Positions 1-53,720 of a DNA stretch of 64,000 bases are shown one piece after another; the stretch's first letter is position 1, and each line of letters starts with the position of its first letter. The stretch is taken from assembly GCA_964188305.1 (NCBI GenBank), contig OZ076890.1; one strand, 5' to 3'. The translations under genes were made by a program, and so were the position numbers. This stretch comes from Podarcis bocagei. Its lineage: Eukaryota. The notes under the pieces are model-generated. The model saw nothing but the letters and a program-made list of their open reading frames with translations. It had not been told where the DNA came from and ran no database searches.

Positions 1-789
1 CTCCTGTGGTTTCCAGCAACTGGTATTCAGAAGTATACTGTATCTGCCAGGTGTGTGTGCCTATGCCAGTATAATCAAATGAGAAGCCAGCACTATTCCT
101 TTCTGGATGAAATGCTCATATTATGATAGGCAGGCATGTATATTGCAGAAACTCTTGCCTCTGGTGATCCCAGCATCTGGAATAGGTCCTACGACTCACC
201 ACCCTCTCAGTGGCATCCCATACAGGTTGACCCATACATCTCAGTTGGAGCCACTGAGAACAAGTCAGTTTCGATCTGCACAATAACCTTAAGAATGGAA
301 AGCAGGGACTTTGGAAGTTGCTCATCAACAGTTAGCACCTGCACAGCTGGTTGATCATAGTCTTCCACACTGCGGTGAAATGTCCTGTTTTCCTATTTAA
401 AGAAATTCTTTATAAATCTAGATTTATGAAAAGCACGTACAAATGTTTTGCGAATCCAGTATGCATTTCCTCCCCCTCCCCATCATTGGGGAAAGGTTTA
501 TGCAAGTAAATTCCACTGAACAAATTTGGACTTACACACGTGGGATTCGGCTGAAAGTGTTCAGAACTTCCCAGAGACAAGGAATGGCAGCTAACTGGAC
601 AAAGCAGAATAAAGTGCCCTACGCATTCACTAATAATTTGAAAACTGGACACACTGCAAAACCCAGCAAGATGGGAGAGCATAAATAAGACAAGTACAGC
701 AAGATCGCCCATATGGGTTCAGTGAATGGTCTTGGGGAGAGAAGCGAGACATCTCTCACATCCCACTGCCTCTCATGTTTGCTGGAGAG

Positions 790-1650
790 ACCAACCAGAG
801 GGCGGATTAAGCCCGCAGGCAAAGCTGTCCTCCCACTTCGCCGGCTGAAACATGCTCACAAGCCCGGCCGTGGGAACTCCCACGCCATACACGTGACCGG
901 CTGGGAAAGAGCGCCGCGACGCCCGCTGGGAGATGTAGTCTTCTGGTGGCTCCTGGTCGGGGCAGGCGCCCGGCTGAAGAAACCGCATTTCCCAGGGTCC
1001 TCCTGGGGGTGGCGCCGAATCTCCTGCCGGCGAGCTGCTGCACCCGGGCGGCGTTGCTGAAAAGGGGGAGGAGGGAGGAGGTCTCTGTTCCGCGAGCCTC
1101 GGCGTTTCCTCGCGCCAGCGCTGCAAGAGGAAGGCGGGTTTCCCGTGAGGCAACAGCAGCAGCAGCAACTTTTGCTTTCGCAACTCCGCCGGCAGCTGCG
1201 CAAGCGGCGAGCTGCTCCGCTCTCGGACTCGCTGCGAGGGTCCCGCGCCACCTGCCTCGCTCCGTCAGCATGAGTTTGTGGGCTCGCGTGGGCATCTTGG
1301 GCACCCTGGCGTACTGCGTAGCGAGCAAGAGGAGAGCCCTGGCCGAGCCCAGGAGGAGCAAAGCGCCGCGCGGAAGCGGCGGCGACGACGACCCGCTGGA
1401 GCTCAAGCTGGTGCAGGTTCTTTTCCGGCACGGCGCCCGCACTCCGCTGAGACCCATCCCCGATGTGGAGCAGGTGAGGGGTGGAAGGAGAGGGGCTGCG
1501 GGGAGAGGGACGGAGCTGGCGGAGCAGGGCTCGCCGTCCCACTCGGCCACCAGCGGGTCACCGGGCCAGGCAGTCCCTCAGTCCAGCCGAACCTGCCTCC
1601 CAGTGTCGTCGTCGGGATGAAATGGGGAGAGGGGAAACCATCTATGCCGC
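790..1650. promoter_or_regulatory. CpG island / ACP6 promoter and first exon
   Basis: Sharp rise in GC and CpG density around exon 1. E-box CACGTGAC at 890-897 and ZNF143-type CTGGGAGATGTAGT at 926-939. Confidence 0.85.
1270..1473 (+). CDS. ACP6: ACP6 coding exon 1 (MSLWARVGILGTLAYCV...FRHGARTPLRPIPDVEQ)
   Basis: ATG in agcATGa context, RHGxRxP catalytic motif, donor CAG|gtgagg, phase 0. Confidence 0.93.
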
Positions 1651-2134
1651 CTTGAACCCCAGGCAGAAATGATGCAGTCAATGCATACATGCCTCTTCCC
1701 TTTCCCTCTGGCCCTTCCCAAAAACAAGGGCCATGGGGGAAGCATCAGCTGGGGGGGGCGACATTCAGCAATATACCCCTCCCTGGGTTGGTTCGACCCC
1801 TCTTGGCTTCTTGCCCCCCACCATAGGTGCCAACTCCTAGGTAAGTAAAATATTATTTGACCCCCCCCAATAAAATATTTGAGGTGGCTGCCCCCCAAGT
1901 TGATGGGCATTGTGATTCAAATAGTATGTGTGCCTGCAGTGCCTTGTGATCAATTATATGGGGTTGGGGGTCACCTCCCCCCCCCATATTTTATTCAAGA
2001 CAGCACCCCAGCACACACACACACCCGCTGTCTGTTCACTTGCATGCGTGCGCGCACACACACACACCCATCCACACAACCACCCAAGTGGGAAGCACAA
2101 GGTGAGGGTCCCATTTGCTCTCCTCGCTGTTTGC

Positions 2135-2280
2135 TGGCTAGGAAGATCTACAGAGTCAGACCGCTCATCCGTTGTCCACACTGGCTATTCTTCAGGCAGG
2201 AGCTTTCCCCAGTCCTACCTGGAAACGCCCAGGGTTGAACTTGGGACTTCCTGCATGAACAGCTGATGCTTTGCAACTTT
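2135..2280 (-). mobile_element. Degenerate tRNA-derived squamate SINE (Squam2-like). Related remnants near 20615-20725 and 42620-42790.
   Basis: Reverse strand reads like a tRNA head (...catgcaggaagtcccaagttcaaccctgggcgtttccaggtagg...). Family name from memory. Confidence 0.5.
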
Positions 2281-4235
2281 CCTGTTCCTAAGAGGGCAAG
2301 TGGGCAATGACAAAAGGAGGTCCAGCAGGGCCAGGAGGCTCAGCAAGTGGGGGCTTTGAGTGGAGCCCCCTGGTACCGCCCCCCCCCTCTGGGCAACACA
2401 GGCAAGCCTCAGCCAAGATCAAACCGGGGGGGGGGGGACAGCTAGTTGGGGGTGCCTGGTTGTGATAGTAGTAAAAAGGGGGGGGTTAAAAGAACATGTT
2501 AATATTGTGTCCTTAAGTGTTAAAAGTATCTCTGCTACATTGTCTCACTAATCTTTGTAACAACCCTGCCAGGTATTATGCACCTGTGATTTTAAAAAAT
2601 GTTTTTATAACCCAGTGCTGTAAATTGGCATGAAAAGCAGCAGCTTGCCAAATAATTATCAGGCATGTTCATGCAGAAATACTAGTGGAGCCGATGATGC
2701 CCTGGGCCTTGGAAATTCCTGGTGCTAACAGCAATCAATTCCTAAAGAAGGTGCTGCATTTTTTCCCCAGCTGACCTAAAAAGCCATTTGGCACATCAGG
2801 AGCAGGTGGAGGAAGCGGAAGTGGTCCGAGGAGCAGCAGAGGTTGCTGAGCTTACTAGCTCAGGGCTGTCAGTGTGGGCATTTTCACGAGGCAGCAGGTG
2901 AAGGAAGCATAGGTGGAAAATTTGGCTTTGCTCAGTGCCAGTAGCCACCAAGCGGAACGCAGGCCAAAGTACAGAAGGTACAGCAATAAGACACCTTTAT
3001 ACCGCCAACCCACAATCTGATAAAGTGGATATTTGCCCCAGAGTGCCTTGGCATAGAGAACATGGAAACAAACGTGGGAATTATGTTAAAATGTGGGCTG
3101 CCGCAGAGCTAAGGGAGTGAGCTCCATGTGAGGTCAACTCTATTGTGGTCACTTGCTTAATGCCTGCCATTCATACTGGTGGGGTGTGCTAGCTTGGGCT
3201 GCTCTGCTGCCTGTCAACAATGAGATGCTTCCTTCATTACCAGCTGGGTGCTGCAGCCCCAAATTGTGAGCGCTGGAAGGTGTAAATGCAACTGTATGCC
3301 AGAGATGGGGAGTGTGCAGACATGGCTGGACAACAATTCCCATCATCATCCCTGACCACTGGCCATGTATGTTATGTGCCTACTGATGAGTAAGAATAGT
3401 GACTCATTTATAGTGCTAATTCTCTAGCCTTGTTTTGTGCATCTCCTCCTATCTTGAATGTTACCAACCCATAGGCTAACTAACAAAGTACTATAAATAA
3501 TTTGATTGGGGTGCTTGCCTCTTGCCCTTTTAACTTCAGGAGATGCATGCATAAACATGCATTTGCATTAGTGCAGGATAGCAGTGAACATCAATCAGCC
3601 TGTAATAATAGTAAAAGTAATAATAATAATTTATATCCCGCCCGCCCTCCCCAGCCAAAGCCAGGCTCAGAGCGGCTGTATAGTCAAGATTTGGAAATTT
3701 TTCACTCTGCTTCAACCAGATCAAAGTTTATGTCACTGTCTTTCATAAACAGGTGATGAGAGAAGGCATTGCAACTTCTACTTACCCAGTTTATGAACTA
3801 CTTACCCAACACCTGCATTTCCTCTTGATTTTGTAGCTGGAATAGAATTAATGGTTGTGTTTATTTTTCCTTATGCACCATGTTCCTCTCTTGGCTCTAC
3901 CTAGCAACTTGTGATAACTTCTGGTGATGAACAGATTTGGCAGATTTACCACCTAAATCAGTAGGAAGTGCAGTTGTGAAGAAATGGAGATTGCTCTTTT
4001 TAAAGTTCCTAAACTCATACACTTTAAAGTGGAAGTTGTGGGGAAGTGGCCAAGAACTACTGATGGCAGATATGCTTCTTAGGATGAATACAGAGAAACC
4101 CTGATATTTTAAACAGTCCAGAGCAAGCCTCATTTGTATTTTCTGTGTTGCAGTGTTTCCAAAGGCAAGTGCTTGGAATAGGTCAAGGATTGGGCGCCTA
4201 CCAGCTTTTCCTCTGAGGACCAGCTGTTTAATAAC

Positions 4236-4440
4236 TTAAGAGCCCTGCTGGATGAAGCATATCTAGTCTGGCACTATGTTCTCACAGTGGCCATCAGATG
4301 CCCGTAGGAGTACCATAAGCAGAACCTGAGTGCAACAGTGCTCTCACCACACATAACTGGTCTTCAGAGGTATTTTGTTTCGGACAGTGGAGGTAGAATA
4401 TAGCCTCCATAGCTGGTGGCCATTGATAGCCTTGTCCTCC
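4236..4440 (-). mobile_element. CR1-type LINE 3'-end remnant. Similar remnants at 1-110, 7700-7806, 54870-54950.
   Basis: Similar to the 3' end of the CR1 copy at 59422 (aagagccctgctggat...gttctcacagtggcc). Confidence 0.55.
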
Positions 4441-5438
4441 ACAAATCAGCTGAGCAGGGTAGGAACACCTGCCATAGGTGATGCTATAATTGCGGCATTG
4501 AACAAGGACCATGACTTGGTTCTCTGTATTTGTAACCCTGACTAAAAGAATTGCAAGCAATCCTCTCTTGACTTTTTAACCAGCAAAATAGTTGGATATA
4601 GTATTTTAGCCCTGGCAGTTCTGCAGAGATCCATTTTTACAAGACTTCCTGATGTTGGTGTCCATAAGGCATGTGCAGCACATTTTATTAGGGGTGTGCT
4701 TACCTAGTAAATTAAATTGAAACACAGTTCTTATGAAGCCGAACAAAGGGAGAGCGAAGTGGGAGGGGGTAAAAAGAAGGGATGGAGACACAGGTGAGCA
4801 CACAGAGACTCCAGTCCACAAGCCCATCTGTGCCCCTTCCCGTCCCATAGTCACTACTTTGCATTATGGCTTCTGAGTCATCCCCAAAGCAAACCCAAAA
4901 CTCCTCCCAGGCTGACCCCACTCCTGCTCCTCCACGAAGTCTAAGAATGACACACAGGAACAAGCTATTCGCTGCTGCTGCTGCTGCTTCTCCTCCTCTT
5001 GTTACACACACAAAGCAGAGCCAGCCAAGGAGGCCTTGCCATGCTCTGACTGCTTCTCCAAACACGGGAGTAGGAGTGCTGCCACCTGCCATTGTAAAAC
5101 ATTGCTGAGGCTGCAGCCACTTTTTCTTTCTCAAGACATTAGAGTATGCATGGGCACACCCAGAAAGTATGCCTACATTGATGTTTTTGTATATTTCAAA
5201 ATCCTGGAGTAAGAAGATTGTAAAATGTGTCACTGCCTGCTCCTCTTGCAGCAGCACAGCCTGAGCGTTGAATGAGATGTTTTAGCACCAAGCTTGCAGA
5301 GTTTGCCATGCCTCTAAGCCCACTGAAATAAATTTGATTTTCCACAGTAGTGGGTTGTCAACCTCTTCTAGCTACTTGAAGGTCCCAGTTGCCTACTCAA
5401 ATGCTTTTTCTTTTCCTTCATCCTTGTTTTTGGAACAG

Positions 5439-5567
5439 GTGGTATGGGACCCTGCTCTGTTGGAGACGCCTGCCGAAACAAAGTTTGACTACACAGTAAC
5501 GAACCTGGCTGGTGGGCCAAGACCTTATTCTCCTTTCGAAGAAAGCTACAAAAAAACAGTGCTGAAG
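5439..5567 (+). CDS. ACP6: ACP6 coding exon 2 ([11 protein letters not shown]...YKKTVLK)
   Basis: Pyrimidine tract + aacag| acceptor, AAG|gtgacc donor, 129 nt. Confidence 0.93.
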
Positions 5568-5648
5568 GTGACCCAACATGTATTCCTTTGGAAATGTTGC
5601 ATCTCCCTTTATTTTTTCAGCCATTCAACAGAGCTTTTCTCTTCCCAG

Positions 5649-5779
5649 GGTGGAGTGAATGCAGGCCAGCTGACCAAAGTAGGAATGCAGCAGACGTTTG
5701 CACTGGGGAAACGGCTAAGGAGACGTTACATTGAGGAGACCCATTTCCTCTCGCCAGCATTCAAACCTTCTGAGGTCTT
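5649..5779 (+). CDS. ACP6: ACP6 coding exon 3 ([15 protein letters not shown]...KPSEV)
   Basis: cttcccag| acceptor, GQLT..G motif of histidine acid phosphatases, TT|gtgagt donor. Confidence 0.95.
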
Positions 5780-6092
5780 GTGAGTCTCTGAACACTCCAG
5801 TTTCCTTCCTAACAGCTTTCTTGCTCTTCCTGCTGACTGTTCCGCTCCCTCCCAGCCCACACGGCATCATAAGCCTTAGCAAAGTTTCATCCAAAGTCCT
5901 CGCTTGCTTTCTCCCTCACACCACGGTGTTCAGTTTGATGTTAAGAATCTCCAGCTAGAACAGATAGCAGTGCTTGGTACTGCCATATTGGTGGCTCAGA
6001 GTGCTGAAACCCCTCAAGTCCCACCCCGTGTCAGTTTGTACAGGGAGCAGCCCACTGTGCTCCCATTTCATTGGCTGCCTTCTGTCTTTCAG

Positions 6093-6172
6093 TGTCCGTT
6101 CCACTAACATTGTTCGGAATCTGGAGTCCACGCGGTGTTTGCTAGCTGGGCTGTTCCAACAGCAGAAAGAAG
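6093..6172 (+). CDS. ACP6: ACP6 coding exon 4 ([21 protein letters not shown])
   Basis: ctttcag| acceptor, RST..R..ES motif, G|gtcagc donor. Confidence 0.95.
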
Positions 6173-6316
6173 GTCAGCAATGAAGGGGAGCTCCTTGCTC
6201 CTCTGTTCGCAGTCCTGCCTTGGAGTTTCTCTCCTAACAGAGATCATTGCCCTTTACACCACTGTTCTCTTTCTGGCTCTTCTGTTTATCACTGTCTATT
6301 ATGCCATACCCTAGTG

Positions 6317-6452
6317 CAGTGTTTCTCAGACTTGGGTCCACAGCTGTTGTTGGACTACAACTCCCATCATCCCTATCTAGCAGGACCAATGGCCAGGAAT
6401 GATGGGAGTTGTAGTCTAACAACAGCTGGGGACCTGAGCCTGAGAAACACTG
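6317..6452. mobile_element. Non-autonomous hAT (Charlie-type) MITE, palindromic, 136 bp
   Basis: 13-bp TIR CAGTGTTTCTCAG/CTGAGAAACACTG and perfect 8-bp TSD CCCTAGTG (6309-6316, 6453-6460). Confidence 0.92.
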
Positions 6453-6976
6453 CCCTAGTGGATTCTGATACTGACACTTGCACTCTAAATGAGGAATTTC
6501 ACGTTTAGAAGGAACTGGTGACTACTCAGAAAAGGAGTGCTATGTTGGCTCCCTTGCTGCAACTCCTAGGGTAGAGGATGTAGTTTGCAAGGTTTGTGGT
6601 GTTGGTGGGCTTTTATTTATACAGTCATGCAATTGGGTGCAGCTCATGCACTGTATCATTTTGGGAACGTTTTCAGTAGGTGAGCTCACCGTGGCAACTG
6701 CATCAGGCCCAGGAGCTAGTAGCATGTTGCAGAGCTGGCCTCAGAAGGGCCCAGACCCCTGCTGCTCCCACAAGTATATTTCTTGCTGCATGCCTGCTTC
6801 ACAGACCTTTGTTAATGCATGCAGGTATTCTCTACATGCCTCCCTTTACCCAGGCAGGGCAAACATCGATCACAAGTTTCTGATACAGCAGAGAGCTTGA
6901 CCCCCGTAGTCAGCACAACTTGCATCATGCCCATTGCCCATTGCACCCTACTACCCTTGAAAACTGAAGGAGATGG

Positions 6977-7511
6977 AAAATTCAGCAGCCAGGTTGATCA
7001 CTGGAGCAAGACGGTCTGAGCGTATTACACCGAGCGTATTACCAATTAGTTTCTGGCTCCAATACAAAGTCCTGGTTTTGACCTATAAAGCCTTAAAACA
7101 GTTCAGGACCACAATACCTCAAGGACCGCCTCTTTCCATATGAACCTACCTAGTCTCTCAGATCATCTTCTGAGACTCTCCTTCATGTGCCTCCTCCCTG
7201 AGAGGTCCGGAGGGTGGCAACACGAGAATGGGCCTTCTCTGCAGTGGCTCCCTGTCTGTGGAATGCTCTCCCCAGGGAAGTTCATCTGGCGCCTTCATTA
7301 TACACCAGGCAAAAACGTTCCTTTTTAACCAGGCCTTTGATTGGCATTCTATGCCCTTTTAAAATGTGTTCTTTTGGGGGGGGGTATTGGGTTGTTGTTC
7401 TTTATTTTGATTATGTATTTTGTGGTTTTATATTTTGACTTTATTCTGTAAACCACCCTGAGACCTCTGGGCATGGGGTGGTATATTATTAATATTATTG
7501 AAATAAATAAA
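6977..7511 (+). mobile_element. 5'-truncated L2-clade LINE (ORF2 C-terminus + 3'UTR + (TAAA)n tail)
   Basis: Encodes NSAARLITGARRSERITP...PISFWLQYKVLVLTYKAL, typical of the L2 ORF2 end, and finishes in aaataaataaa. Confidence 0.8.
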
Positions 7512-7948
7512 TGCAAAATTTACAGAAGAAAAAAAGAGACAAAGCAGGGAGAAAAAATGAGAAGGAAAAGGGGGGCAGAAAAGGAAATTGGCTAGTTCCA
7601 TCTTCCTCCCAACTCCCATGATCAGAGTTGTGGTTCAAAACATGGGGAAGGCTGACCCAGCTATTAGTCCCATTTGCTTGGAATCGCAGGTGGTCAGAGC
7701 ACTGTTGCACTCAGGTCCTGCCTGAGGGTTTCCCATAGGCAACTGGTCAGCCATTGTGGAGTAGGTGGGCCCTTAGCTAATCCAGCAGGCTCTTCTTATG
7801 TTCCTAAGGAGAAGGTTCGAAATGATACTACAAACTGGCAGCCAGAACAAAACTTAAATGGGAAGGCAATGGCCATACTGCTTGTGCCATGCACCTTGAG
7901 GGTTGGGAATGAGCCTCTATTCAAAACCTTTAGTTGCCCAGCTTTAGA

Positions 7949-8086
7949 GAAAGATGGGTAACTTGGGTCCTCTTGATGTTGCTGGACTAAAACTCCCACC
8001 ATCCCCGGCCATTGCCCATGCTGGCTGGAGCGGATGGGAGCTAGAGTTCCCAACCACATCCAGAGAGCCACAGATAACCGACCCGG
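7949..8086. mobile_element. Degenerate palindromic hAT MITE
   Basis: Core ggactaaaactcccaccatcc...gatgggag related to the 6317 copy. Confidence 0.6.
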
Positions 8087-8789
8087 CTCTCAAACGCTGC
8101 TCTGAGCAGGCACCAAACTTATATGTGGAGCTGCACAGAGACCAGGAAGAAGAATGGAACAAACAAGTTAAATCTCAAAAGTTTTGATACTAGGATTAAG
8201 TAAATTGCAATGTTCTGCTACCAAAACATTTGTGCATAAACCACTATTTCTTGCAGAAACTCTTATTGTGTTAAACCTGATTATTGGGAAATGATTAGGA
8301 AGGGAAGAGCGCTGCGCTTACTTCTGGTTTTGTAAACCCCAATGTTTACAATGGTGGCTGTTACAAACTGCTTTGATTAAGATAATGGCATGCTGTGGTG
8401 TAAATTAAGTTACAAGTAAGAGAATCATGTGGTGTAAGTCGTTCTGTGTAAGAGCAGAATATATCACCAACAAGTATCTGAAGGCATGTGTTAATAAGTG
8501 TGCTTTGCTGAGCATTTAGCACAGTGGGCTCTTGCCTTATTAGTGCAGGCATGATTTAATGTTTGCTTGAAGCACAAATGTAATTGGGAGCATAGACTTG
8601 TATGCTCCCAAGTGCAGGGGAAGTTCCCTAATGAGCTTTGCACAAATGAGGGTCGAGATGGGTAAGAGATTGTCCTAGGATTATAAACTATTTTAAATCA
8701 GTACAAGATGTGTTTGAATTAATTCTTAACAGCCCGAAACTTTAAACCATGAATTGCAAGTGCATTCAATGTTTTTTTGTCTTGTACAG

Positions 8790-8877
8790 GACCCATTACC
8801 ATAGTTACAGATGGAGCAGACTCTGAAATCCTTTATCCCAACCCAGTGAACTGCCATGGACTGAAAGTCATGAACAG
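8790..8877 (+). CDS. ACP6: ACP6 coding exon 5 (PITIVTDGADSEILYPNPVNC)
   Basis: tacag| acceptor, AG|gtatct donor, phase matches neighbours. Confidence 0.93.
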
Positions 8878-10185
8878 GTATCTTGCCACAAACATTCTGT
8901 CTGGTGCCACTGTGCAGACAGAAGGTGCAGTAGTTATTGCAGCAAGGCCTTTCAGAAGACCTTGACCTAAATTATATGCATGACATCAGTTGATTGCCAA
9001 AAGCAATGTGCTCCCCTAAACCCTGTGAACGGTTCTGGACCTGTTCAAGCATTTAAAAGAACAGGTGGGAAGTGTTCAAACTGGGCAGAGGAGCATAGCT
9101 TAGCCACCCCTGCTCCTCCTTTTGCAAGGAGGATTGAGCTGCATTCAGAATCATCTTTATCAGGAACTTGTGCAGTCAACATGCAAAGGTTTGCTGGGCT
9201 GGGGAGCTGCACATTTTCACATGCTTCAGTTTGAGCCTTCATACACGCTTGAACCTGAAAGACACCTTCTGACTTCCTGGGGGCGGTTGGCTTGTTGCAT
9301 CCCTCACAGAACCGTTCCAGTGTTCCTCTGTGAAGCAAGCCCAGGCTTGCCATTCTTACCTTGCCTCTTTCCCTGCACCTTTTATGCCATTGCAAAAGTT
9401 TCCTTAGGGAATGACTGTGTGAGATCTAGCCATAGCCTAAAAGCTGCTGACGTGTAAGACTGCGAGACGAGAACAAAATAGCCAAAGCAAATCATGCTCT
9501 TATTGTATGTTAGAGCAGTTGTCCAACTATGTTGTGAATAAACTATTTTCAAACAATTTAAAAAAAAGCAAGCAGTTGGAATGAAAACTTCTGAAGTAGC
9601 CTACCATACTTCTGTGTCTCACAGCTTGACTATTTAAACGGCTCAGATGATAGCATTTGTTTCCCCAAACTTATACTGTAGCGACCGGTTGCATTTTGTG
9701 GAGCGGCTAATGTGCTTGCTGTGGGCTCCTCTGGGATTGTGATGGGAAAGGGCTCTCTAATATGCTGCTTGACAATTCTAGTGATTCGGTGAACTGCGTA
9801 ACTGGTGCCCAGTCAGCTCAAATAAAAGCAAGTATGATCACGCTTGTGTCAAAAGCCTATGGGACAGAGAGTGAACGGCAATTCCCTAACTCCTGGCAGA
9901 GCCAATACGATGCTATTATAATCACTATATTCTAAGACAACCCCATATGCAATTCTGCTTCTCTTTTAAGAACTGCATCGGTAACAGTTTCCTTTTCAGG
10001 GAAGCTGTGGCAAAATTAGGAATTTTCAAAGGTGGCTGTAGGCAAGCATGCCACCTTGTCCCTGCAATTCAAGGGGCCTGGGACCGTGCAACATCAGTGT
10101 GGCATGCACACATAATGCAAGCATGCCCCATGGGCGGCACCCCCCACACACACCTTGGTGCCCCTGTCCATAGGCTACTCTTGTA

Positions 10186-10315
10186 CAATGGTGCAGCTAA
10201 CCTGTGGTCCCTTCCAGATATTGCTGGGCTCTCAAATTCCATCACTCCTGGCCATGCTGGCTGATGGGAGGTGGGATCCAGCAACATCTGGGGCGCCATT
10301 GGTCATTAACATCTT
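10186..10315. mobile_element. Degenerate palindromic hAT MITE
   Basis: Inverted arms ccagatattgctgg / ccagcaacatctgg. Confidence 0.55.
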
Positions 10316-10580
10316 CCCTAGTGAGGCAAGACCTATTTAGTTATTTGCCCTGAAAAAGATCCGAGTCAACTAAGGAAAAATTATTTTCACGTGCTTAAGA
10401 CCTCTTGCTTTTTTGTAACTAATTCTGATGCATTTAGTTGTCTATTGCTCAAGCAATCATTTCAAGCCAAACAGCCCTGCACTCCTTTCTCCCTTCTAAC
10501 AAGCAGGGGGATCCAAGCACAGTAGCTTGTGCAGATTGCCATTTATGCATTATTCTGAAGCTTTCGTTTTTCCTCGACAG

Positions 10581-10716
10581 AGAGAGGCTGGCCAATGTGC
10601 TTCTTCTGCAGCCAGGAATTGCGGAGGATCTGAAGACCATTAAAGAGAAGATGGGCCTTGACAGCAAGAACGGGGCGGACTTCTTTCTCCTTTTTGACAA
10701 CATTTTTGCAGAACAG
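10581..10716 (+). CDS. ACP6: ACP6 coding exon 6 ([18 protein letters not shown]...DNIFAEQ)
   Basis: tttttcctcgacag| acceptor, CAG|gtacgc donor. Confidence 0.92.
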
Positions 10717-10808
10717 GTACGCTGTGCCTTTGTAGGAACAAGCCTGTTTTCTTTAGCCATCCAAGTTGATTCATGCAGGTCTGTGGGAGAAGCTGTGCTG
10801 AAGTAGAG

Positions 10809-10934
10809 CAGTGTGGCCGCCCAGGTGCTGATGGGCTCCAGCTCCCATTAGCCCAAGCCAGAATACCCCATGCCCAGGGATGATGGGAGTTGTAGTCAAG
10901 CAATGTATGGAAGGCCACGTGTTCACCATTTCTG
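10809..10934. mobile_element. Degenerate palindromic hAT MITE
   Basis: ctcccattagcc...gggatgatgggagttgtagtc core, ends in ctg. Confidence 0.6.
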
Positions 10935-11983
10935 TGCTAGCAACTATTCAGCAGAGTAGCTCTTGTTGCAAATGGCAAGAGAGGAAACTATGTGTCTTCC
11001 TTCAACTCTCTCCTCAAATGTCACATTTTTTGTCTTTTGGCTTAATTGTTTAACATTTCCTTTTTATCTTTCTCTCCATCCAAAAAAAATTGTTGCCTTT
11101 TACACTGGCAAAATAGATAAGCTCTTTCTTGCTGTTGTTGCTTATGAAAATCTCCAAAGTAGATTGTGTAATTATTTAATCGACTGAATTTCTGTTAATA
11201 GATCTTACCTAGGACCTGATGACCCAGAAGTAGGTTACATGAAGCAGTTAGCATGATATCAGGGGTGGGCCCAATTCTGTAATTCCCTCCTTAGGGTATA
11301 TCTGTGCTCCCTATATTAGATTGATCCCCAGTGCATCATATGAACAGATAACACATCCCGAGTTGGACCTAGCCAGACTCTTAAGTGGTCCAAGGTGGGA
11401 TATTGGCAAAGGCCTGCTACTCCACTTTATCTCAGGTTTGGCACTAAAGATTAAACTGGATGTGGGAAAAGCTTGCGTGCCGAGACATTTTAAGGGGTTA
11501 CATCAGTTACAGCAGAGGGAATACTGAATACTGTATGCTGAACATGACTATTACGGATGCTTAGGCTTTTAAGTGGCCAAGGATTGTTTTGTTGTTATAT
11601 CTTATCCTGAGATCAATAGATATAGAGTAGGCTAGAAATGTTGTAATAGGAAAAATAATGCTCTAGCTGGGTAAACCAGTATAATTACCAATCAGTAAAA
11701 GCAAAGCATTTAACAGCAATAAAAATGTGTGGTTTCAACGTTCAGGGCTCCCTTTCTTTATGGATTTGTCTGAAAAAGCTGTGCACCGTTGTTATGGAGC
11801 TTCTTTCTCCGAGATGCTTCTAACCACCCCAGGGCTTCCTGCAGCCGAGTTTGAAAGCCATTTTTGTACAACTGAACTGAACTGAACTGAATACTTAAAA
11901 CTTGTAGGAAATGAAATGTAATGAAACCCAGGTTCCTCATTGTAAACTTTCCCCTATCCTGCTGTTGTCCTTCTGATCCTGTC

Positions 11984-23500: not shown

Positions 23501-23857
23501 CCAACACACAATACACTAGTAATCACTCCAAGTCTACCCTGTTTCAACCTAGCCTGTATACAAAAGACTATGTTTCTAAGCTAGTGAGAGTAATCAGTTT
23601 GTGCATCCATCTCTTCACAGTTCAATTAAATTATGTCCATACATCAACTAGTACTATGACAATATCTTTACAGACCCTGATCTTGTGCCCAACATAAAGC
23701 AGTTTAGGAGCAGAAAGGTAACAAGCTAGCCTGCCAAGTCTGGTGCATCAGGTTGTAATTAAAAGGAATCAGAGCAGAATTTGTTTAAAAGAAAGGTAGC
23801 ACCTTAGTGATTATATAGTGAAGAAAAAGGATGGTAGGGAAAGTGAGCACAACTGAC

Positions 23858-26090
23858 CTGATTCAACATTTCCCATCATGGCTGGTGAAGACATGGCAAG
23901 AGACGCTTTGTGGTTGGGGGGTATTCCAGGACTCTGCAGTGGGGGCTTTGGAGATGAAGTCCATCCAGGAGAAGGTGCAGGGAGGGACGGAGACTTGAGA
24001 TGGACAGGAGAAGCGGCAGCAGAGCCCATAACAGGAGGAGATTTGATTGAAGCAGCAGCTGCTGCAGTCGGCCCTGCGAGTATCCCTGCCAGCTGGGATG
24101 GAGTCTGGGGGGACTTGAGGTTCCCGGAGGGCGAACCCAGCATGGGAGACTGGACCTGGCGCATGGTGGGGGACTTCAGTGGATTTATGCCTGGAGAATG
24201 AACCTGGCTGGCACCGACGGAAACATCCAAGGGCTTGCGTCCGAGGTTGCGCTGAACAGGAGGAGCTGTGTTGAGGCTGTTTGGGTTGCTGGAGGGATTC
24301 AGAGGTAGTGGTGGCATGTGGCTAAGCCGGTTGTTAGTCCTTTGGTCGGGCCCCATTTGTTCTCTGTGATTCCGGAGACCAACACCTGGGCCCTGAGACA
24401 TAGGATGGAAAGGTCTCGGGCCCATTCCATAGTCCTGCTGGGGATGCTCACCAAATGGCATGGGCACCATTTTCTGCTGCGAGGGGAGTATCTCCGAGAC
24501 ACCTGGGCGCATTTTCATCATTTCCTCCGGGCCCACTCCAGCTTCCCTCATCTTCTGAGGTATCATTGGTGGATTGGAACTCATGTTGACATTCAGATTC
24601 ACATCCCCCTTCATGCTACCAGGGCCCATCCCAAATTCCAAGTCCCTACCAGCTGCCATCTGAGGTGGCATCCCTTTGGGGAAGTCTCCCCTGGAGGGGC
24701 TCATGGACCCTTCAATCGGCATACGTGGGAAGATGGGGTTATTGCCGGGCTCCATGTGTCTTTGAGAGGGAATCATCCGGTTCATTTCCATGCCAGGCCT
24801 GATGCCTTCAAGGCTCATGCCAGGGGGAAGTCCGAGCTGCTTTTCTGCCAGCTGCTGTTGAAAGATCTCCTCAGGCAGGCCCTGAGGATTGGGGAACCTC
24901 TCCCCTCGCCCAGGCCCACTGAACACACCTTGCCCAGGAGGGAAGTTTCGGCCATCTGGCATTTTTGGCACATCTTCCGGCCAAGGGACACCTGAAAGCC
25001 CAGGTCTAGAAGTGGCGTTTGGGACATTGGGACCCTCTATGTCAGGGTTTATCATTCCAGCAAACCCAGGCAGCCGCATCTGACCACCAGGCACATTGGG
25101 ATGGGGGGCCATGCCCCTTGGGGGCAGTGAATGGGACATAGTCATACTTTCAGGAAAGGGCTCTGGGCCCCCAGGACCCCAGCCCTCACCTGGGGTCATC
25201 TGGTATGGAGGTGGGGGGCCTCTGACCAATCCTCGAGGCCCATGCTGGTGAACCATCATGTCTTGTAAAGAACACTGCTGTACAACCTGCTCCTGCTTCC
25301 TCCTCTTTTCTTCGTAGAACTCCTGTTGCAACTTCAGCCAGGCCACCTGCTCGGGGGTCATGTGATCCAGGTGCTCTGGTCCTATAGGACCAGACTGAGA
25401 GTTTAAGGATGGTGGCCCAACTTCATCTGGTGAGAAGGGCATGTCTCGGTGCCCTGGAGGGCCAAAGGGAGCCCCTCCTTCTGTCCGGGGTCCTGGCCCT
25501 TTACCTAAACTTTGGGATTGAGCCATCAAGGCCTGTATTGGCCCTTCAGGCTTCTTTTGGGGACCATCCAGCACTCCAGAATTGGGTGGGGGAGGCCCAG
25601 CTTGGCCTCCAGTGAACTCCTTCTCATCTGGGAAAAGCATACGCTGAATATCTCGCAGAGTCTGCAGGGAACGTTCTCTATGCTCCAGCTGCTCCTGGGA
25701 CAGTCCATCTGGATTTTCACCCATATTTGGTGGGTCCCCACCAGATACCTGCTGGTTGGGACCTTTAGGGTCCGCAGTGGAACTGTTACTTCCTTGGGAA
25801 ACTGGACTAACGGCTCTATTACTGGGGGTTGAAGTTTGCCCAAATCCTTCAGTTTGTAGAGGGGTGGAGTTTGCAGGACTTCCTGCTGACATCACTTTAC
25901 TTTCTAATCCAGGATTGTCCTGCTCAATAGGACACGGAGGGCCAGTAGGTTTGGGTGCTGGTGCCGGCACTGGAATGGGTGGAGTCTGCTGCATTTTGGC
26001 ATTCTGGGGAGGAGTCTGCTCTTGAGAAGCAGGCAGCTGTGATGGAGCTTGGGGCTTTGTATCATTTCGAAGTGGTGGAATCTGAGTGTT
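23858..26090 (-). CDS. BCL9: BCL9 coding exon 5 (large exon with HD2 beta-catenin-binding helix and HD3)
   Basis: Contains most of ORF 23811..25994. tttttcttcag| acceptor, TCAG|gtcagt donor. Confidence 0.97.
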
Positions 26091-31928: not shown

Positions 31929-32527
31929 AGAGATCTGGTTACCTCAGGCAAAATAGCTACAATTTCCATTCAATTTTGTGTTCTAAGGATGTTTCTTTGC
32001 ACTTCTACTTATTTGGGGGGGGGGTGTTTTTGTTCCGTCTATACGAAGAATATGCTTCCCCCCTGAACACCAAGACAGAAGTGACATGGGAACACTTCCT
32101 CTATGTGCCAATATTTACCTTCCCCGTAAAATGGAAGTGGAAGCACTGTGTGCTGTCAAGTGGAATGGTCAAAACTGTCACCCTCTCAAAGGCTGTTTTG
32201 TCCAATTAGAGGATTATGCCAGAGATACTCAATGGGGGCAAAAAACAACAAGAAAACACAAGCGACTACAAAATCAAGAACCTCAAAAGAGATTGCAAAA
32301 ACTTGTAATTTCTTAAGAAATATCATATAAAGGCAGAGAGAACCAGCACATGAAGAGAATTCTCCATATCAGAATAAACTTGAATAGCACTCAGCAGATG
32401 AAACTCACATGACAGGGGGTTCCAATTAAAGTACAGAAGGCAAATAGCGATTCATGTCATAATGCCACCAGAGAGACACAGAGAGAGGGGAAGAATATTT
32501 ATATATATATAAATGTATGCTATTTAC

Positions 32528-32580
32528 CTCTGGGCATTTCCTGATGGGGAATTTCTCACTTTGGGGTTACTGGAATGCAT
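32528..32580 (-). CDS. BCL9: BCL9 first coding exon, CDS part (MHSSNPKVRNSPSGNAQS)
   Basis: ATG at 32580, donor AG|gtaaat. The exon extends upstream as 5'UTR to a probable acceptor at 32857 (alternative 32877). Confidence 0.93.
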
Positions 32581-34151
32581 TGACAGAAATCCTAAGCACA
32601 CAGCCACAAGCACTGAGGGGGGCTTCTTGTCAAGTTCCTCTGTTGCTGCTGGCAGTTCTGAAGCACTTTCTGTCCCTTGCTTTCCTCAGTGCTGTCGGTC
32701 TGCTTGTCTTTTTCCTTTTTGCTTCTCTCTGTTGTTGCACTGGGCCTTTCCCTCTCGCAGCTCCAGCATTCTCCAAATGTGTGACTCCTGCTGTTGTGAG
32801 GAAGTCTCGCATCTCCAGGGCAAACTGAACCAAACCCAGTCAAAGAACAAAAAAAGACTATTAAAAAGGGGAGGAATCTAGAACTAAATGAGATCAGTAT
32901 ATGGCCTTTTTTCTCCACCTTTTTAACTGGAAGGGCAAGATGAGAAAGCTCAACCAGATGGAAGCTGAATGTACATTCCGATTATAAAATAAATGCTTTT
33001 CCGGTATTAGCTACGTAAGCAACAACCAGGTGTGCTAGATCTAACAGATGAGAGGGAGGAAGTTTCTCTGTACTCCAATCCAAGATCATGTACAAACACA
33101 TTTATGTGTAGAGAAGCAAGTTGCTCGTATCAATCAGTTCAAGCTTTCTAAAAGTACTATGCAGGCCACATCACTGCAAAAAGATATAGCAACATTTTTA
33201 GAAGATCACACAATTATTAGCACATCTTAAAAACAGGTAACAATTACCCAAGTGAAACACAAGATGGTGATGGGAGGAGGGATCATTTCATGACTTCTGA
33301 ATAATCAATATCCACCATCAAAATTACTGCATCGAAGTGCTAGGTATCCTATGTCAAAGTTGCTAGGCCCAATTTTCTAGACTATTGTCAATAAATACTA
33401 TGTCTCAATCTACATTTAAATGAAAAGTTAGAAACATTGAACATTATGGTGTTTGAGCAGATTTTAACACAGGGCTTATTCATCACTACTATTACTAAAG
33501 GAATAAAAAATGTTTTTCTTTTTCATGCTGAATAGTTTTGGAACAATTTTATATCAGATTCAATTTATTATCACAGTTTTTATATCAGAACAATTTTTGT
33601 ATCTGAATGAAAACTAGATTACCAACCTCTAACACTGGATGACAATATTCAAATTAAGTATTTTTTCATAATTCATAAGTTTATAAGCTATGAAGAAAGT
33701 AAAAATATAAGAAAGTAGTATTTACTGGTCAGATTTCTTTGAAACACAGCAGTATATTTTGAAAGCAAAAAAAAAAACCCTTTTGTGCTGCTGAAACATA
33801 CTGCAAGCTTTTTCATATGACAATGTCGTAATACTGAATTTTGTCACTCTATGACACAGCATCAACATATCTTAATATCAGAAGATAGCAACAGGACATT
33901 TAAGTTCTTTTCCTCCTTCTACCATTCCTTCCTCAAATGCTTCCAAGTCTGAAGGAAGGAAGTCCTACAAATTTGGCAAAGGATCCCCATACTCAAGTAC
34001 GTAAGGCAACAGAGATTTTAAAAAGATGTATTATTTTTGCTCATTGCAAGGAGAGGAATGTGCCAATTAAATTTTAGATAAGGTCACAGGACAGCTATTA
34101 CTAATGTTGATGCTTAAGAACCTTCAAGAAATACAATCCAATCTGCATTAC

Positions 34152-34993: not shown

Positions 34994-35070
34994 CAGAACT
35001 CCAGTGTCACGACATTGTACTGATCATCCTGAAAATGGGTTCAGAAGCCCTTTGTAGACAAAAAGATCAC
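34994..35070 (-). other. BCL9: Candidate BCL9 5'UTR exon (77 nt)
   Basis: ttgtcttatttcag| acceptor and CTG|gtaagc donor. Confidence 0.6.
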
Positions 35071-49649: not shown

Positions 49650-51879
49650 CCAGATGAGGTCCCAGGTCACTCTTATCTGGCTTAAAACCATAAGTGAGAA
49701 CAACAAAAATCCTGAGCATCATTATTTAAAAGTGCAACATCTTCCAAGTTCAATAAAGATAGTCCATGTTCACCATATTTTAATGCACATGACTCATAAA
49801 TGCAACATCTAACTTGACACCAAAAGAATATGTCAAGTGACACGCTTTAGATAAATGTAAATCAGTGTAAACTAGCTGCAGCTCTTCTGCTGGATCCCCC
49901 CCCCCCAGCACACATTGACCAGGTTGCTGAGCCCTACCTCAAGCTAAGCAAAATCAAGTTTATTTCAAGTAGGAAATAAATGTACAGTATGTTGAATTAG
50001 CTTTACATTCCAAATTTGGTTTATGGACCAAAAATTTACCAGGTAGTTTTGAGCAAAACTAGTTCACATTCATCACACTATTCCAACCAACTGGCTAAAT
50101 TTCATTTCATCTGTAAGCTGAATGGAAGAGCCATAATAATGAGAACATACATGCCATTTAAAAGCATTTCTTAACACACCACACTCAGACAACAGTATTC
50201 AACGTGATATATAAATGAAGTTCTTAGCTTCATTTGTGGAAGTGCCCTCAGTTCCCCTCAGATAGAAAGTACTGAGGAACTACCCCTCCAGGAATCGCTG
50301 CAATGACTACAGACTGTGTACACTTGAATATATGAATTAAAAATAAAGCTGAATGGAAGCAAGTGATATTTGTGGATGATATGATGTGCCCACGCTGCTA
50401 TACTCCAATGTGCTTTTCTTTTAACTACTTTTACACAAATGTTTTCTACCTCGCCACCATTTTACAACACATTAAAATAACTCAAGTTTCAGTGCGAACC
50501 AAAATAGACATTTTTTCCTCTCCTCTTAACACAGGTTGATGGACTGCATTTTAGTCAGCCTACTCTGTTGTTTATTTAAATGGAGCATTAGTTTAGTAAG
50601 AAAAAAGTAGCAAACAGGGAGGTAGAATAAACTGAACGCAAAGATTGACAATCTGAAGTTAAGATAGCACACCAGAGTATTTAGCATTTCAGAAAAAAAC
50701 CAAGTTCTCTTTGTATACTACCCCTTCAATGTTACATCAACATTCAAGTGACCTAAAGACCAGACTCAAGAAAGGCTAGGAGAAAAAGGCCCTACTGAAT
50801 TGTGTGGCCTCTCCTACCCAATTCAGCTTTGAAACTCTGTACTAATTCTACATATCACAGGTCAAAACTTAGGAGCATGTCTGTCTCCCCATTTACAAAA
50901 ATGGTTTTGGAATGTAAGAGCAATTAGTCTATTACTTTAAGACCAATGCATAGTATGATCTAATCTGTATGTGGTTCTAACTACAGAACTAAAAAATGAC
51001 TGAATGTGTAAATTTCCAGGGTGGAGATAACCTCAACAGATTTGCACCATCTACCTACGCATGCAATTAAGCAAACAGGGACTGACCAATATTCACAGCA
51101 CTTCAGGAGAAATTATCAAGCCCCTGATTTTTACCCCCCCCCCCATCTACAGCTCCCTTTAACTAGCAATGTGGAATAGTACTCCTTGCAGACTGGGCAT
51201 CTAGTTCACAATCCCTCTGACCAGCATTGTTGGGAGGGGGAGCACTATGCTCTCTGGTCATGTACAGAAAGACCTCTTAAACAGCTCTGCACACCTGACT
51301 TTCTTAACAGCCTTGCGGAGGGTCGCCTTCGGCCACCCCATTTCCATGCACTGGATCCACAAACCGTATTCTTACCCCCTTGCACTTTTATTCTTCTGCC
51401 CCCTAAGGCCCATGGCGACTGCCTAGGTAGCCCAGAAGACACAAACACACACCCCGTCCCTCTCCTCCCCCCCCCACCTCAAAGCCTAAAGCAGCTCCTC
51501 ACCTCCAGAAGCATCTGCAAAATCCTCCCCCTTTCAGCGGCGACCCACAATAGCAAATCCCCTTATTTAACTGGAACGGGGAGAAGGAAAACGGGGGTGG
51601 GGGAGTGTGAAGCGTTCCTTACCCCCAAATTCCCAGGCTCACTCCGTTCCTTCCACCCTGTTTTCCTAACCCAGGCTGCCTTCCTCCGTTACCCACAGAG
51701 ACGCACGAACCCCCCCGCCCCAGAGGGCTGGCATCTCCTGCCCAGACACCCGCCTTGCCACAACACGCACACCATCCACACACACACCCAAGCGCATGCA
51801 CATACTACTCCGTGTACACAGATAGCCCACCCGCCCCCCTTTTCCCAGACTCAAGGTTTCTCTCCCCCCCCCAGGCCGT

Positions 51880-52800
51880 TTGTTCTTCCCCTCATGCGAT
51901 GGACACGCCTCCTCCCTCCGGCCTCCTCCACGGCTCTCCTTCCAACCCGCCCCCCCCCGCCCGCCCGCCCGCCTCGGGCGACTAATCGGAGCCGCCCCCA
52001 CCCCCGCCTTGCTTTGCCAAGCGCCGACCCCTCCCGCCTCTTTCCCTCCCGCCCGCGCCCCCACCTCACTCTCCCCGCGCCCGCCCGCGCCAGGTTTTTC
52101 GACCAGCCCCCAAACTCCGAAACTTTCCCCCGAACAGGAAGGCGGGATGGCGGTTACCCGGCGGCCCCTCGTCCTCTCGCCGCGCCGCCCCCCCCCCCCA
52201 GCACCACCTCAACACACGCGCGCGCACAGCCCGCCTCCCCACGGCCCGCAGTTTCCACGGGTGCCGCTGGCACCATGCGGAGGATCCTCCTGCCCGCCTC
52301 CCTCCGCACGCTCACCGCTCTTGCCCACCAAGGGCGGAGGGGCCTGGCCCGGCCGGGGGGCACCTCTCAGCCCCGGGCAGGAGGCGGCGGCGGCGCAGCG
52401 TCTCCCCCCGGCGACGGCGAACTCGCTCCTTTCCCGCAAACACACACAGGCTCCATTGTCCGCCAGCCAGCCAGCCTCCCCCCTCCTCCTTCTCCTTCTC
52501 CTCCCCCTCTCCCACATGGTACCGCCCATCGCCCCTCGGCCTCCCTCCTTCTCTTGCGCGCCCCCCCCGTCCGCTCCCCGCGAATGAAGCAGCCTATCGC
52601 GCGCGCGCTTCCCCCAACCCCCCCGGCCCACCCAATCAATGGAACGTCCCCTCCTCACTCACGGGCAGACTTTGACTTCTCCAAGCCATCGGGGCCGCCT
52701 CGCCTCCCCAGCAACGGGAATGGTAGTGTCCCGATGGAGAGGAGAGGGGGGGGCTAGATCCCCCCCTTCCCTCTCTCACGGAATGGTATCAACTGATTCC
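51880..52800 (-). promoter_or_regulatory. BCL9: BCL9 CpG-island promoter / probable first exon (donor GCG|gtgagc at 52316)
   Basis: Very GC/CpG-rich, CCAAT at 52632-52636, GC boxes, minus-strand splice donors, upstream of BCL9 exons. Confidence 0.8.
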
Positions 52801-53079
52801 TTAAAGAGACAGGCCTTGAATGCATGGGTCCTTCCTCCCCTGTAAAGCAGCACCGCCCTCACCTCCCTCCATTCATCCTGGCACCGCCCCCGCAATTAGC
52901 ATAGGCCAGCCCCATACCTCAAGGTAGTTTTCTTTCCGCCGCCTCTTCCCTCTTAAAGACGCAGCCACCCAATGGCACTTCTTAAAGCGACATGCTGCCC
53001 TTTAAAAAAATATATATTCTTTCCCCCCACCACACACACACACCCCGCAAAGTCATCTCCACCAGGAACTCCTCGGAGC

Positions 53080-53720
53080 CAGCCTGGAATCTCGGCACGT
53101 TTATTTCAAGGCATCAGAAGGCATAGAAGTGTCTGTGGCAATGCGAGGGGGAGCACACGTCCCAAGCCTAAGCCACACCCAGGCAGGCGCGCACACACAA
53201 AACACACACACGGACGCTCTGCACACTTCCCACACCTCAGGGCCCCTCGTCTCCCAGGTACGGCAGCCGCGCCGCACGCTGCAAAAGCACACACGACACC
53301 TCGCCGCGCTGAGATGCGTAAGCCTGAAGCAGGCTCTTACCAAAATCGAGAGACCGGGCGAGTGAGGCAGGGAGTCGGGCTGCGGCGCAGCACAGGGCGA
53401 ACACACGTTCTCCTCCCGCCTCCACTTGCCCCCCCCCCACCCACCCACCCACAAAATAGCAGACACTGATTTAAAGAGCACCATCCATCTCAATTGCAGG
53501 CGCACAAATTGGATTTTGCAGAATTAAAAGCCGAGCTCTCTGGCCGGGAGGTCGGGGTCGTCGTATTAATTCAGGAGATGCATTCCATCTCGGCGATCGG
53601 GCGGTCCCCGAATCTGATCGGCTCCCAGAATTATTCTCTCCTTCCAACCTCACACGCCCGCTCTCCCGTCTTGTGTGCCCTATTACATAAACCCGGCGGG
53701 CTATCAACAAAACCAAACGC
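53080..53720 (-). promoter_or_regulatory. Second CpG-rich block, possible alternative BCL9 first exon (donor TTG|gtaaga at 53341)
   Basis: CpG-rich sequence with a strong minus-strand donor. Confidence 0.5.

Follow-up and report, generated by a model that had tools for sequence, protein, structure and literature searches.

A Probable Relic of the Ancestral BCL9 N-Terminus in the 5' Leader of BCL9 in the Wall Lizard Podarcis bocagei

The BCL9 Locus and Its Leader Exon

The window analyzed here is a stretch of 64,000 nucleotides from the wall lizard Podarcis bocagei (contig OZ076890.1, assembly GCA_964188305.1), and positions without a label refer to it. A 727-codon ORF in a large exon (23811–25994) matches the UniProt entry A0A670HNM9, BCL9 of Podarcis muralis, with 100% identity. 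This identity assigns the window to BCL9 of the wall lizard, which is encoded on the minus strand. The 5' part of the gene contains the following features.

34994..35070, minus strand: upstream non-coding exon (5' end approximate), matching the 5' part of the lizard transcript L001
32528..32824, minus strand: BCL9 leader and first coding exon, with the acceptor AG at 32826–32825 and the donor GT at 32527–32526
32578..32580, minus strand: BCL9 main start codon (MHSSNPK), in the weak context tcaATGc with T at −3

L001 is a 5.7-kb transcript contig from a related lizard, about 91% identical, which maps to the window in spliced exons. The leader exon of L001 corresponds to 32824–32528, and its upstream exon (~35070–34994) is spliced straight onto the base after cag. 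The similarity between species also starts exactly at this cag acceptor of the leader exon. For Podarcis itself, the splice signals are present, and 14 sequencing runs guessed to be RNA contained 60–72% of the words sampled from 32450–32900, a region with an exon share of 66%. The boundary of the leader exon in Podarcis rests on these splice signals and the transcript of the relative.

The upstream exon includes a mini-uORF of 6 codons on the minus strand (ATG at 35027, TGA at 35009–35007). A 6-codon ORF is present at the equal place in the lizard transcript L001 (~43–63) and in the frog transcript L006 (~44–64). The context of the main AUG, with T at −3 and C at +4 (32578–32583), is invariant in seven tetrapod sequences.

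Two other parts of the window deserve description. Just beyond the 3' end of BCL9 lies a histidine acid phosphatase gene (Pfam His_Phos_2) on the plus strand at 713–11000, probably ACP6. The same phosphatase gene is beside BCL9 in a turtle (L005:25199–29335) and in a bichir (Polypterus), and its position next to BCL9 in lizard, turtle and bichir therefore indicates an old gene neighbourhood. About 18 kb upstream of the leader exon, the region 51000–53500 is G+C-rich and contains long spurious ORFs on both strands. It is probably the CpG island of the BCL9 promoter together with the first exon.

Two Overlapping Upstream ORFs

Two upstream ORFs are present in the leader exon. Here they are called uORF1 and uORF2 in the order of their start codons.

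32630..32812, minus strand: uORF1, ATG at 32812, 60 codons, TGA at 32632–32630, in the +1 frame, overlapping all of uORF2
32686..32769, minus strand: uORF2, ATG at 32769–32767, 27 codons, TGA at 32688–32686
32581..32685, minus strand: 35 codons after the TGA of uORF2, in frame with the main ATG only in squamates; the ancestral frame covers no more than about the last 14 of them (see below)

An earlier note, made from the letters of this DNA, had described an ATG at 32769 with A at −3, followed by a single TGA at 32688–32686 and 35 open codons into MHSSNPK. All of these features were verified on the minus strand. The context of the ATG is agaATGc. This ATG lies 189 nt, or 63 codons, upstream of the main ATG and is in frame with it in Podarcis. 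The 35 open codons (32685–32581) run directly into the BCL9 ATG at 32580–32578. There is thus an in-frame stop codon before the main AUG, the uORF2 TGA, 105 nt upstream of the main ATG. The exon joins of L001 place the 32769 ATG within the mature mRNA of a close relative. It is in a spliced exon of both the lizard transcript L001 and the frog transcript L006, and both upstream ATGs are included there.

The ATG of uORF1 is 43 nt upstream of that of uORF2, and its stop codon is 49 nt before the main ATG in Podarcis. The length of uORF1 is 58–68 codons in amniotes, compared with 42 codons in frog. The peptide encoded by uORF1 (32633–32812, minus strand) is 90% identical to the RefSeq protein XP_062831028.1 of Anolis carolinensis, "uncharacterized LOC128071544 homolog". 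RefSeq proteins of Anolis and Pogona were matched in a word search with the uORF1 peptide of Podarcis. Exact look-ups of the uORF1 peptides of Mustela and Chelonia found RefSeq clusters from ten mammals and four turtles, many of them named LOC128071544 homolog. The comparisons left aside a 161-aa Logan/ENA member of the mammalian cluster (P0172). In total, annotated copies of uORF1 come from ten mammals, four turtles and three lizard species. Nineteen amniote copies (that of Podarcis and 18 others) align well over the first 43 residues. Unlike the overlapping uORF1, uORF2 is not annotated anywhere. In a protein model of Crotalus adamanteus (P0019), the uORF1 frame is read first and MHSSNPK follows after a jump, apparently an artefact of gene prediction.

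A smORF in the 5'UTR of human BCL9 was reported to be supported by Ribo-seq, with a negative PhyloCSF score and clear similarity in other mammals; its frame was unspecified (10.1101/523860). The LOC128071544 homologs of RefSeq are probably this human smORF. In the literature on a BCL9 uORF, microprotein or N-terminal extension and on LOC128071544, this human smORF preprint was the only report found.

The N-Terminal Extension of Anamniote BCL9

BCL9 homologues were collected by a word search seeded with the N-terminal 110 residues of Podarcis BCL9, and matches were obtained from all vertebrate classes. Of 54 anamniote BCL9 models, 49 begin with MLE(V/L)QE(E/G)R..HF.K(K/R)ER.KKE. and continue as an open frame of 56–99 codons into S-MHSSNPK, whereas 33 of 34 amniote models begin at MHSSNPK. 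The models with the extension include elephant shark, bichir, paddlefish, many teleosts, coelacanth, caecilians, newt, and about 20 frogs. The extension can be aligned from shark to frog. It has conserved blocks at both ends, and all of its length changes are in frame. The methionine used as the main start in Podarcis corresponds to a conserved internal methionine of anamniote BCL9. The weak and invariant context of the main AUG fits a codon that may have started as an internal methionine. Translation of the anamniote extension is judged from frames that stay open and residues that are conserved, both in automatic gene models. No domain was found by Pfam either in the anamniote extension or in uORF1.

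The earlier note had stated that teleost Bcl9 proteins have an MLEV-like start. This proved correct, as seen in the 49 of 54 anamniote models, and the lizard ORF opens with the same residues. Homology of the uORF2 frame to the N-termini of fish and amphibian BCL9 was also found, with the first 15 codons matching. The possibility that uORF2 is a chance ORF was rejected, as its ATG, length and stop codon recur in six amniotes and its start matches the anamniote proteins.

Some anamniote models have unusual starts. In the model of Callorhinchus milii (P0143), 14 additional codons (MREFL...) precede MLEV in the same frame. This shark model implies 42 nt between the two ATGs; the distance is 43 nt in seven tetrapod sequences, in which the first ATG is out of frame. 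From the shark model and protein models of Leptobrachium, a 1-nt insertion between the upstream ATGs in amniotes was considered, and was dropped because the spacing is also 43 nt in frog. In Brienomyrus brachyistius, isoform X3 (P0137) starts in the third frame (GDAR...RECW.C) and then joins the usual extension.

A 2-nt Deletion Shared by Amniotes

The DNA of the leader exon was compared among Podarcis, a second lizard (transcript), Pantherophis, Pitta, Chelonia, and Mustela, with one frog (transcript) as the outgroup. In this sampling, squamates are represented by two lizards and one snake (Pantherophis), birds by Pitta, turtles by Chelonia, mammals by one mustelid (Mustela), and anamniotes by the frog.

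The upstream ATG is present in all six amniote sequences, uORF2 is exactly 27 codons long in each of them, and the stop codon is in the same alignment columns. The earlier note had made its proposal depend on conservation of the ATG and the stop codon in other amniotes, and both are present in 6/6 aligned amniote DNA sequences, Podarcis included. The stop codon is TGA in five sauropsids and TAA in Mustela. In Mustela, uORF2 starts with ATG-CTG-GAG-CTG, the start that the earlier note had named for the human leader, and has its stop at codon 28. The spacing of the two upstream ATGs is 43 nt in all six amniotes and in the frog.

The distance from the MLE ATG to the aligned stop codon is 81 nt in every amniote, compared with 83 nt in the frog. 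In the frog, the aligned TGA is outside the coding frame and ends a 42-codon uORF in the +1 frame, which starts 43 nt upstream of the MLE ATG. The difference and its consequence for uORF2 can be summarized as follows.

32720..32730 (approximate), minus strand: net 2-nt deletion in amniotes relative to the frog, a 2-column gap in 6/6 amniotes in the DNA alignments, at codons 15–16 of uORF2
32686..32769, minus strand, in two parts: codons 1–15 of uORF2, probable relic of the ancestral BCL9 N-terminus; codons 16–27, outside the ancestral frame

A profile HMM of 18 anamniote extensions supports this frame switch. It matches frames of Podarcis with about 21–24 bits. In Podarcis, the second lizard, Chelonia, Mustela, and Pitta, the match to the uORF2 frame is strong only over the first ~19–25 positions, and the third frame is matched from position 14–15 on. 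The third frame of Podarcis scores 24.5 bits over HMM positions 14–49, with a run of residues close to that of Xenopus. The Podarcis DNA around uORF2 also aligns with the coding sequence of the frog. In Podarcis, the ancestral frame rejoins the main frame only about 14 codons before MHSSNPK.

The 2-nt gap is a disabling lesion seen in 6/6 amniotes, and the later frame-breaking indels differ among squamates, bird, turtle and mustelid. The uORF2 ATG is in frame with the main ATG in the three squamates; the distance between the two leaves a remainder of 1 on division by three in Pitta and Mustela, and of 2 in Chelonia. As the lesion is common to sauropsids and a mammal, it dates to the amniote stem. 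The ancestral state of the overlapping uORF and the exact site of the 2-nt deletion rest on one frog outgroup together with protein-level data.

What is left of the ancestral extension after the deletion lies in the third frame, which is broken in the turtle and the squamates. In Mustela (L004:2741–3003) and Pitta (L002:2747–3003), this frame has no stop codon between the start of the exon and the main ATG, with which it is in register, and contains no ATG. An extended protein in mammals and birds, made from a non-AUG start or from a start in an upstream exon, is conceivable.

The earlier note had speculated that a coding N-terminus was converted into a uORF in amniotes. The origin of uORF2 as a relic is supported, since anamniotes keep the extension and amniotes have lost it. 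The cause differs from a mutation to TGA: the frog has a TGA in the same columns in another frame, and a nonsense mutation was therefore rejected in favor of the 2-nt deletion.

Selection on the Leader Frames

The ratio pN/pS was pooled among the six amniotes over 127 gap-free nucleotides from the first upstream ATG to the uORF2 stop codon. The null distribution was obtained by permutation, in which substitution patterns were shuffled among columns of equal consensus base. The results for the three frames are as follows.

uORF1 frame: pN/pS 0.43, null 0.73, P = 0.007
uORF2 frame: pN/pS 0.90, null 0.61, not lower than the null
Third frame: pN/pS 0.75, null 0.67, not lower than the null

Sauropsids alone give the same picture, with 0.78–0.90 for the uORF2 frame. 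The corresponding value for the first 17 codons of BCL9 is 0.04. Among the six amniotes, no purifying selection on the uORF2 peptide was found by pN/pS against the permutation null. Codon-level conservation of the uORF2 frame, by which the earlier note had suggested that its idea be examined, is absent up to its stop codon (0.90 against 0.61). The coding signal of uORF1 (0.43, P = 0.007) is moderate as judged from substitutions, and it is weaker in the last third. All indels within uORF1 are multiples of three, and those between the uORF1 stop codon and the main ATG are not. There are no indels from the first upstream ATG to the uORF2 stop codon in the six amniotes, and many further downstream.

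The ATG, length and stop codon of uORF2 have been unchanged for >300 My; in these tests, selection on uORF2 is inseparable from the constraint on uORF1. Two explanations of this persistence can be considered. One is that uORF2 has no function of its own, and that its ATG, length and stop codon persist only through its position inside the conserved uORF1. This explanation is compatible with the origin of uORF2 as a relic, and has a chance not far below even. Over the same 127 nt, pN/pS is 0.43 for uORF1 and 0.90 for uORF2, and sauropsids alone agree with this picture. The uORF2 ATG coincides with the codons for E-N-A-G in uORF1, a stretch with almost no variation in 19 amniotes. The contrast between the indels of uORF1 and the later ones points in the same direction, as does the annotation of uORF1 as a protein by RefSeq in mammals, turtles and lizards. 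Against it stand two third bases at which changes would be synonymous or conservative for uORF1, that of an Asn codon (the T of the uORF2 ATG) and that of a Leu/Val/Ile codon within the uORF2 stop. At both, an ATG and a stop codon (TGA or TAA) are still kept in 6/6 amniotes, in a sample too small for significance.

The other explanation is that uORF2 is selected as a working regulatory uORF. It would offer a short route permissive for reinitiation, and would set, together with uORF1, the supply of ribosomes to the weak BCL9 AUG. The A at −3, the length of exactly 27 codons and the TGA or TAA stop codon in 6/6 amniotes are consistent with such a function. So are the lack of indels from the first upstream ATG to the stop codon, the position of this stop codon 102–121 nt ahead of the main AUG, and the T at −3 of that AUG. 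Ribo-seq is reported to show translation of a smORF in the 5'UTR of human BCL9, although which one is unspecified (10.1101/523860). However, the peptide of uORF2 is under no detectable constraint, and every conserved feature is confounded with uORF1. Selection for regulation by uORF2 itself is possible but, on this balance, rather doubtful.

It can also be speculated that the leader is conserved as an RNA structure or another nucleotide-level element, and that the ORFs are incidental. The leader of Podarcis is 67–85% identical to those of frog, mustelid, bird or turtle, and the flanking intron is unalignable. The last third of uORF1, in which there is no clear coding signal, would also be explained in this way. 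However, the substitutions favor the uORF1 frame. RNAalifold on seven leaders gave 0 compensatory pairs among 46, with an unfavorable covariation term, and no Rfam match was found at E ≤ 1. An RNA structure or a known RNA family is accordingly unsupported by Rfam, RNAalifold and a shuffled-fold test, and the leader as a nucleotide-level element with incidental ORFs is improbable.

Proposed Read-Through of the uORF2 Stop Codon

Besides the conversion into a uORF, the earlier note had proposed that low-level read-through makes a long isoform. If the TGA were read through, or if a long isoform had been overlooked, lizard BCL9 would be extended at its N-terminus. Podarcis, the second lizard and the colubrid snake indeed have no further stop codon in this frame between the TGA and the main ATG. 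This frame relation is specific to squamates, however, and is lost in the bird, the turtle and the mustelid. Most of the 35 codons after the TGA are outside the ancestral frame. Because the ancestral frame returns only about 14 codons before MHSSNPK, read-through of the TGA would not restore the old N-terminus.

The signals around the stop codon do not favor read-through, either. The UGA-CUAG class is a known context of programmed read-through in vertebrates. The base after the uORF2 stop codon is G or A (TGA-G in Podarcis), not that of the leaky UGA-CUAG context. The 96 nt around and after the stop codon fold no better than shuffled sequences (z = 0.19), and neither covarying structure nor an Rfam match was detected. 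The squamate indels between the uORF1 stop codon and the main ATG include one of 3 nt, and there is no other hint of coding in this interval. The long isoform is unsupported, and we consider it highly improbable.

Evolution of the BCL9 Leader

The preferred interpretation is that uORF2 is an evolutionary relic of the ancestral BCL9 N-terminus, disabled by a 2-nt deletion on the amniote stem, and that it may now be translated and, together with uORF1, lower or tune BCL9 translation. From the comparisons above we give this reading a probability of about 0.8.

The evolution of the leader was probably as follows. In the gnathostome ancestor, translation of BCL9 could start at the MLE ATG, which would yield an extension of about 60 residues leading into MHSSNPK. 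Sharks, ray-finned fishes, coelacanth and amphibians appear to keep this start. On the amniote stem, a net deletion of 2 nt near codon 16 would have shifted the old frame onto a pre-existing TGA, leaving 27 codons. The start of the protein would then have been relocated to the conserved internal methionine. The same deletion would have let the overlapping uORF read on, from 42 codons as in frog to 58–68 codons as in amniotes.

In Podarcis, the putative relic is nested in uORF1, and would be reachable only by ribosomes leaking past the first upstream ATG. Scanning ribosomes would meet uATG1 (G at −3), uATG2 (A at −3) and the main AUG (T at −3) in this order. If uORF2 is translated, its translation would end 105 nt before the main AUG, itself in a weak context. 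In amniotes, the distance from the stop codon to the main AUG is 41–50 nt for uORF1 and 102–121 nt for uORF2. uORF2 may be translated and, with uORF1, may lower or tune the translation of BCL9 via leaky scanning and reinitiation. With both uORFs and the 6-codon mini-uORF in the leader, BCL9 translation is expected to be lowered and perhaps tuned. Since the conserved features of uORF2 are all shared with uORF1 codons, its contribution beyond that of uORF1 is undecidable from sequence.

A more comprehensive scenario can also be imagined, in which one 2-nt deletion on the amniote stem swapped the frames. This single event would have removed the conserved N-terminal module of 60 residues and moved the start to an internal AUG in a weak context. 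It would also have created a 27-codon uORF and a smORF of 58–68 codons, later under selection, and the nested uORFs would now control the translation of BCL9 in all amniotes. All of these steps together are rather unlikely.

BCL9, a cancer gene, encodes a core co-activator of Wnt/beta-catenin signalling. In fish and frog, annotated BCL9 proteins begin with a conserved module of about 60 residues that includes a basic K/R-E-R-x-K-K-E-K motif; this module is made by no amniote. This difference of the N-terminus matters when results from zebrafish or Xenopus are transferred to mammals, and also for the design of constructs. The leader gives a clean and datable example of a coding N-terminus that probably became a uORF via a frameshift into a stop codon pre-existing in another frame. 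The type of mechanism is not new. The nested and conserved uORFs before a weak main AUG make translational control of amniote BCL9 a concrete hypothesis.

Comparison with Known Systems

Leaders of the ATF4/GCN4 type have two uORFs and work through leaky scanning and reinitiation. The BCL9 leader is alike in its sequence, having more than one conserved uORF, and a short uORF that ends far enough upstream (105 nt) for reinitiation. It differs from the ATF4/GCN4 type in that the BCL9 uORFs overlap each other and neither of them overlaps the main AUG.

Systems of programmed read-through resemble the squamate leaders in the single in-frame UGA between open stretches. The stop codon of the BCL9 leader is, however, upstream of the main ORF, not at its end. 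In contrast to programmed read-through, the BCL9 leader has no conserved frame, coding signal after the stop codon, leaky context or stimulatory structure.

The annotated LOC128071544 homolog is in the same exon as uORF2 and overlaps it fully. Its frame is a separate one (+1), and its ATG precedes that of uORF2 by 43 nt.

The closest relative of uORF2 is the N-terminal extension of anamniote BCL9, as annotated in Xenopus tropicalis (P0120), Latimeria (P0132), and Callorhinchus (P0143). Both have the same ATG, the same exon and the first 15 residues (MLE-L/V-Q/R-E-G/E ... R-E), and both are at the same position, about 60 codons ahead of MHSSNPK. In Podarcis and the other amniotes seen, unlike in anamniotes, a 2-nt deletion disrupts the frame, which stops after 27 codons and leaves uORF2 outside the protein.
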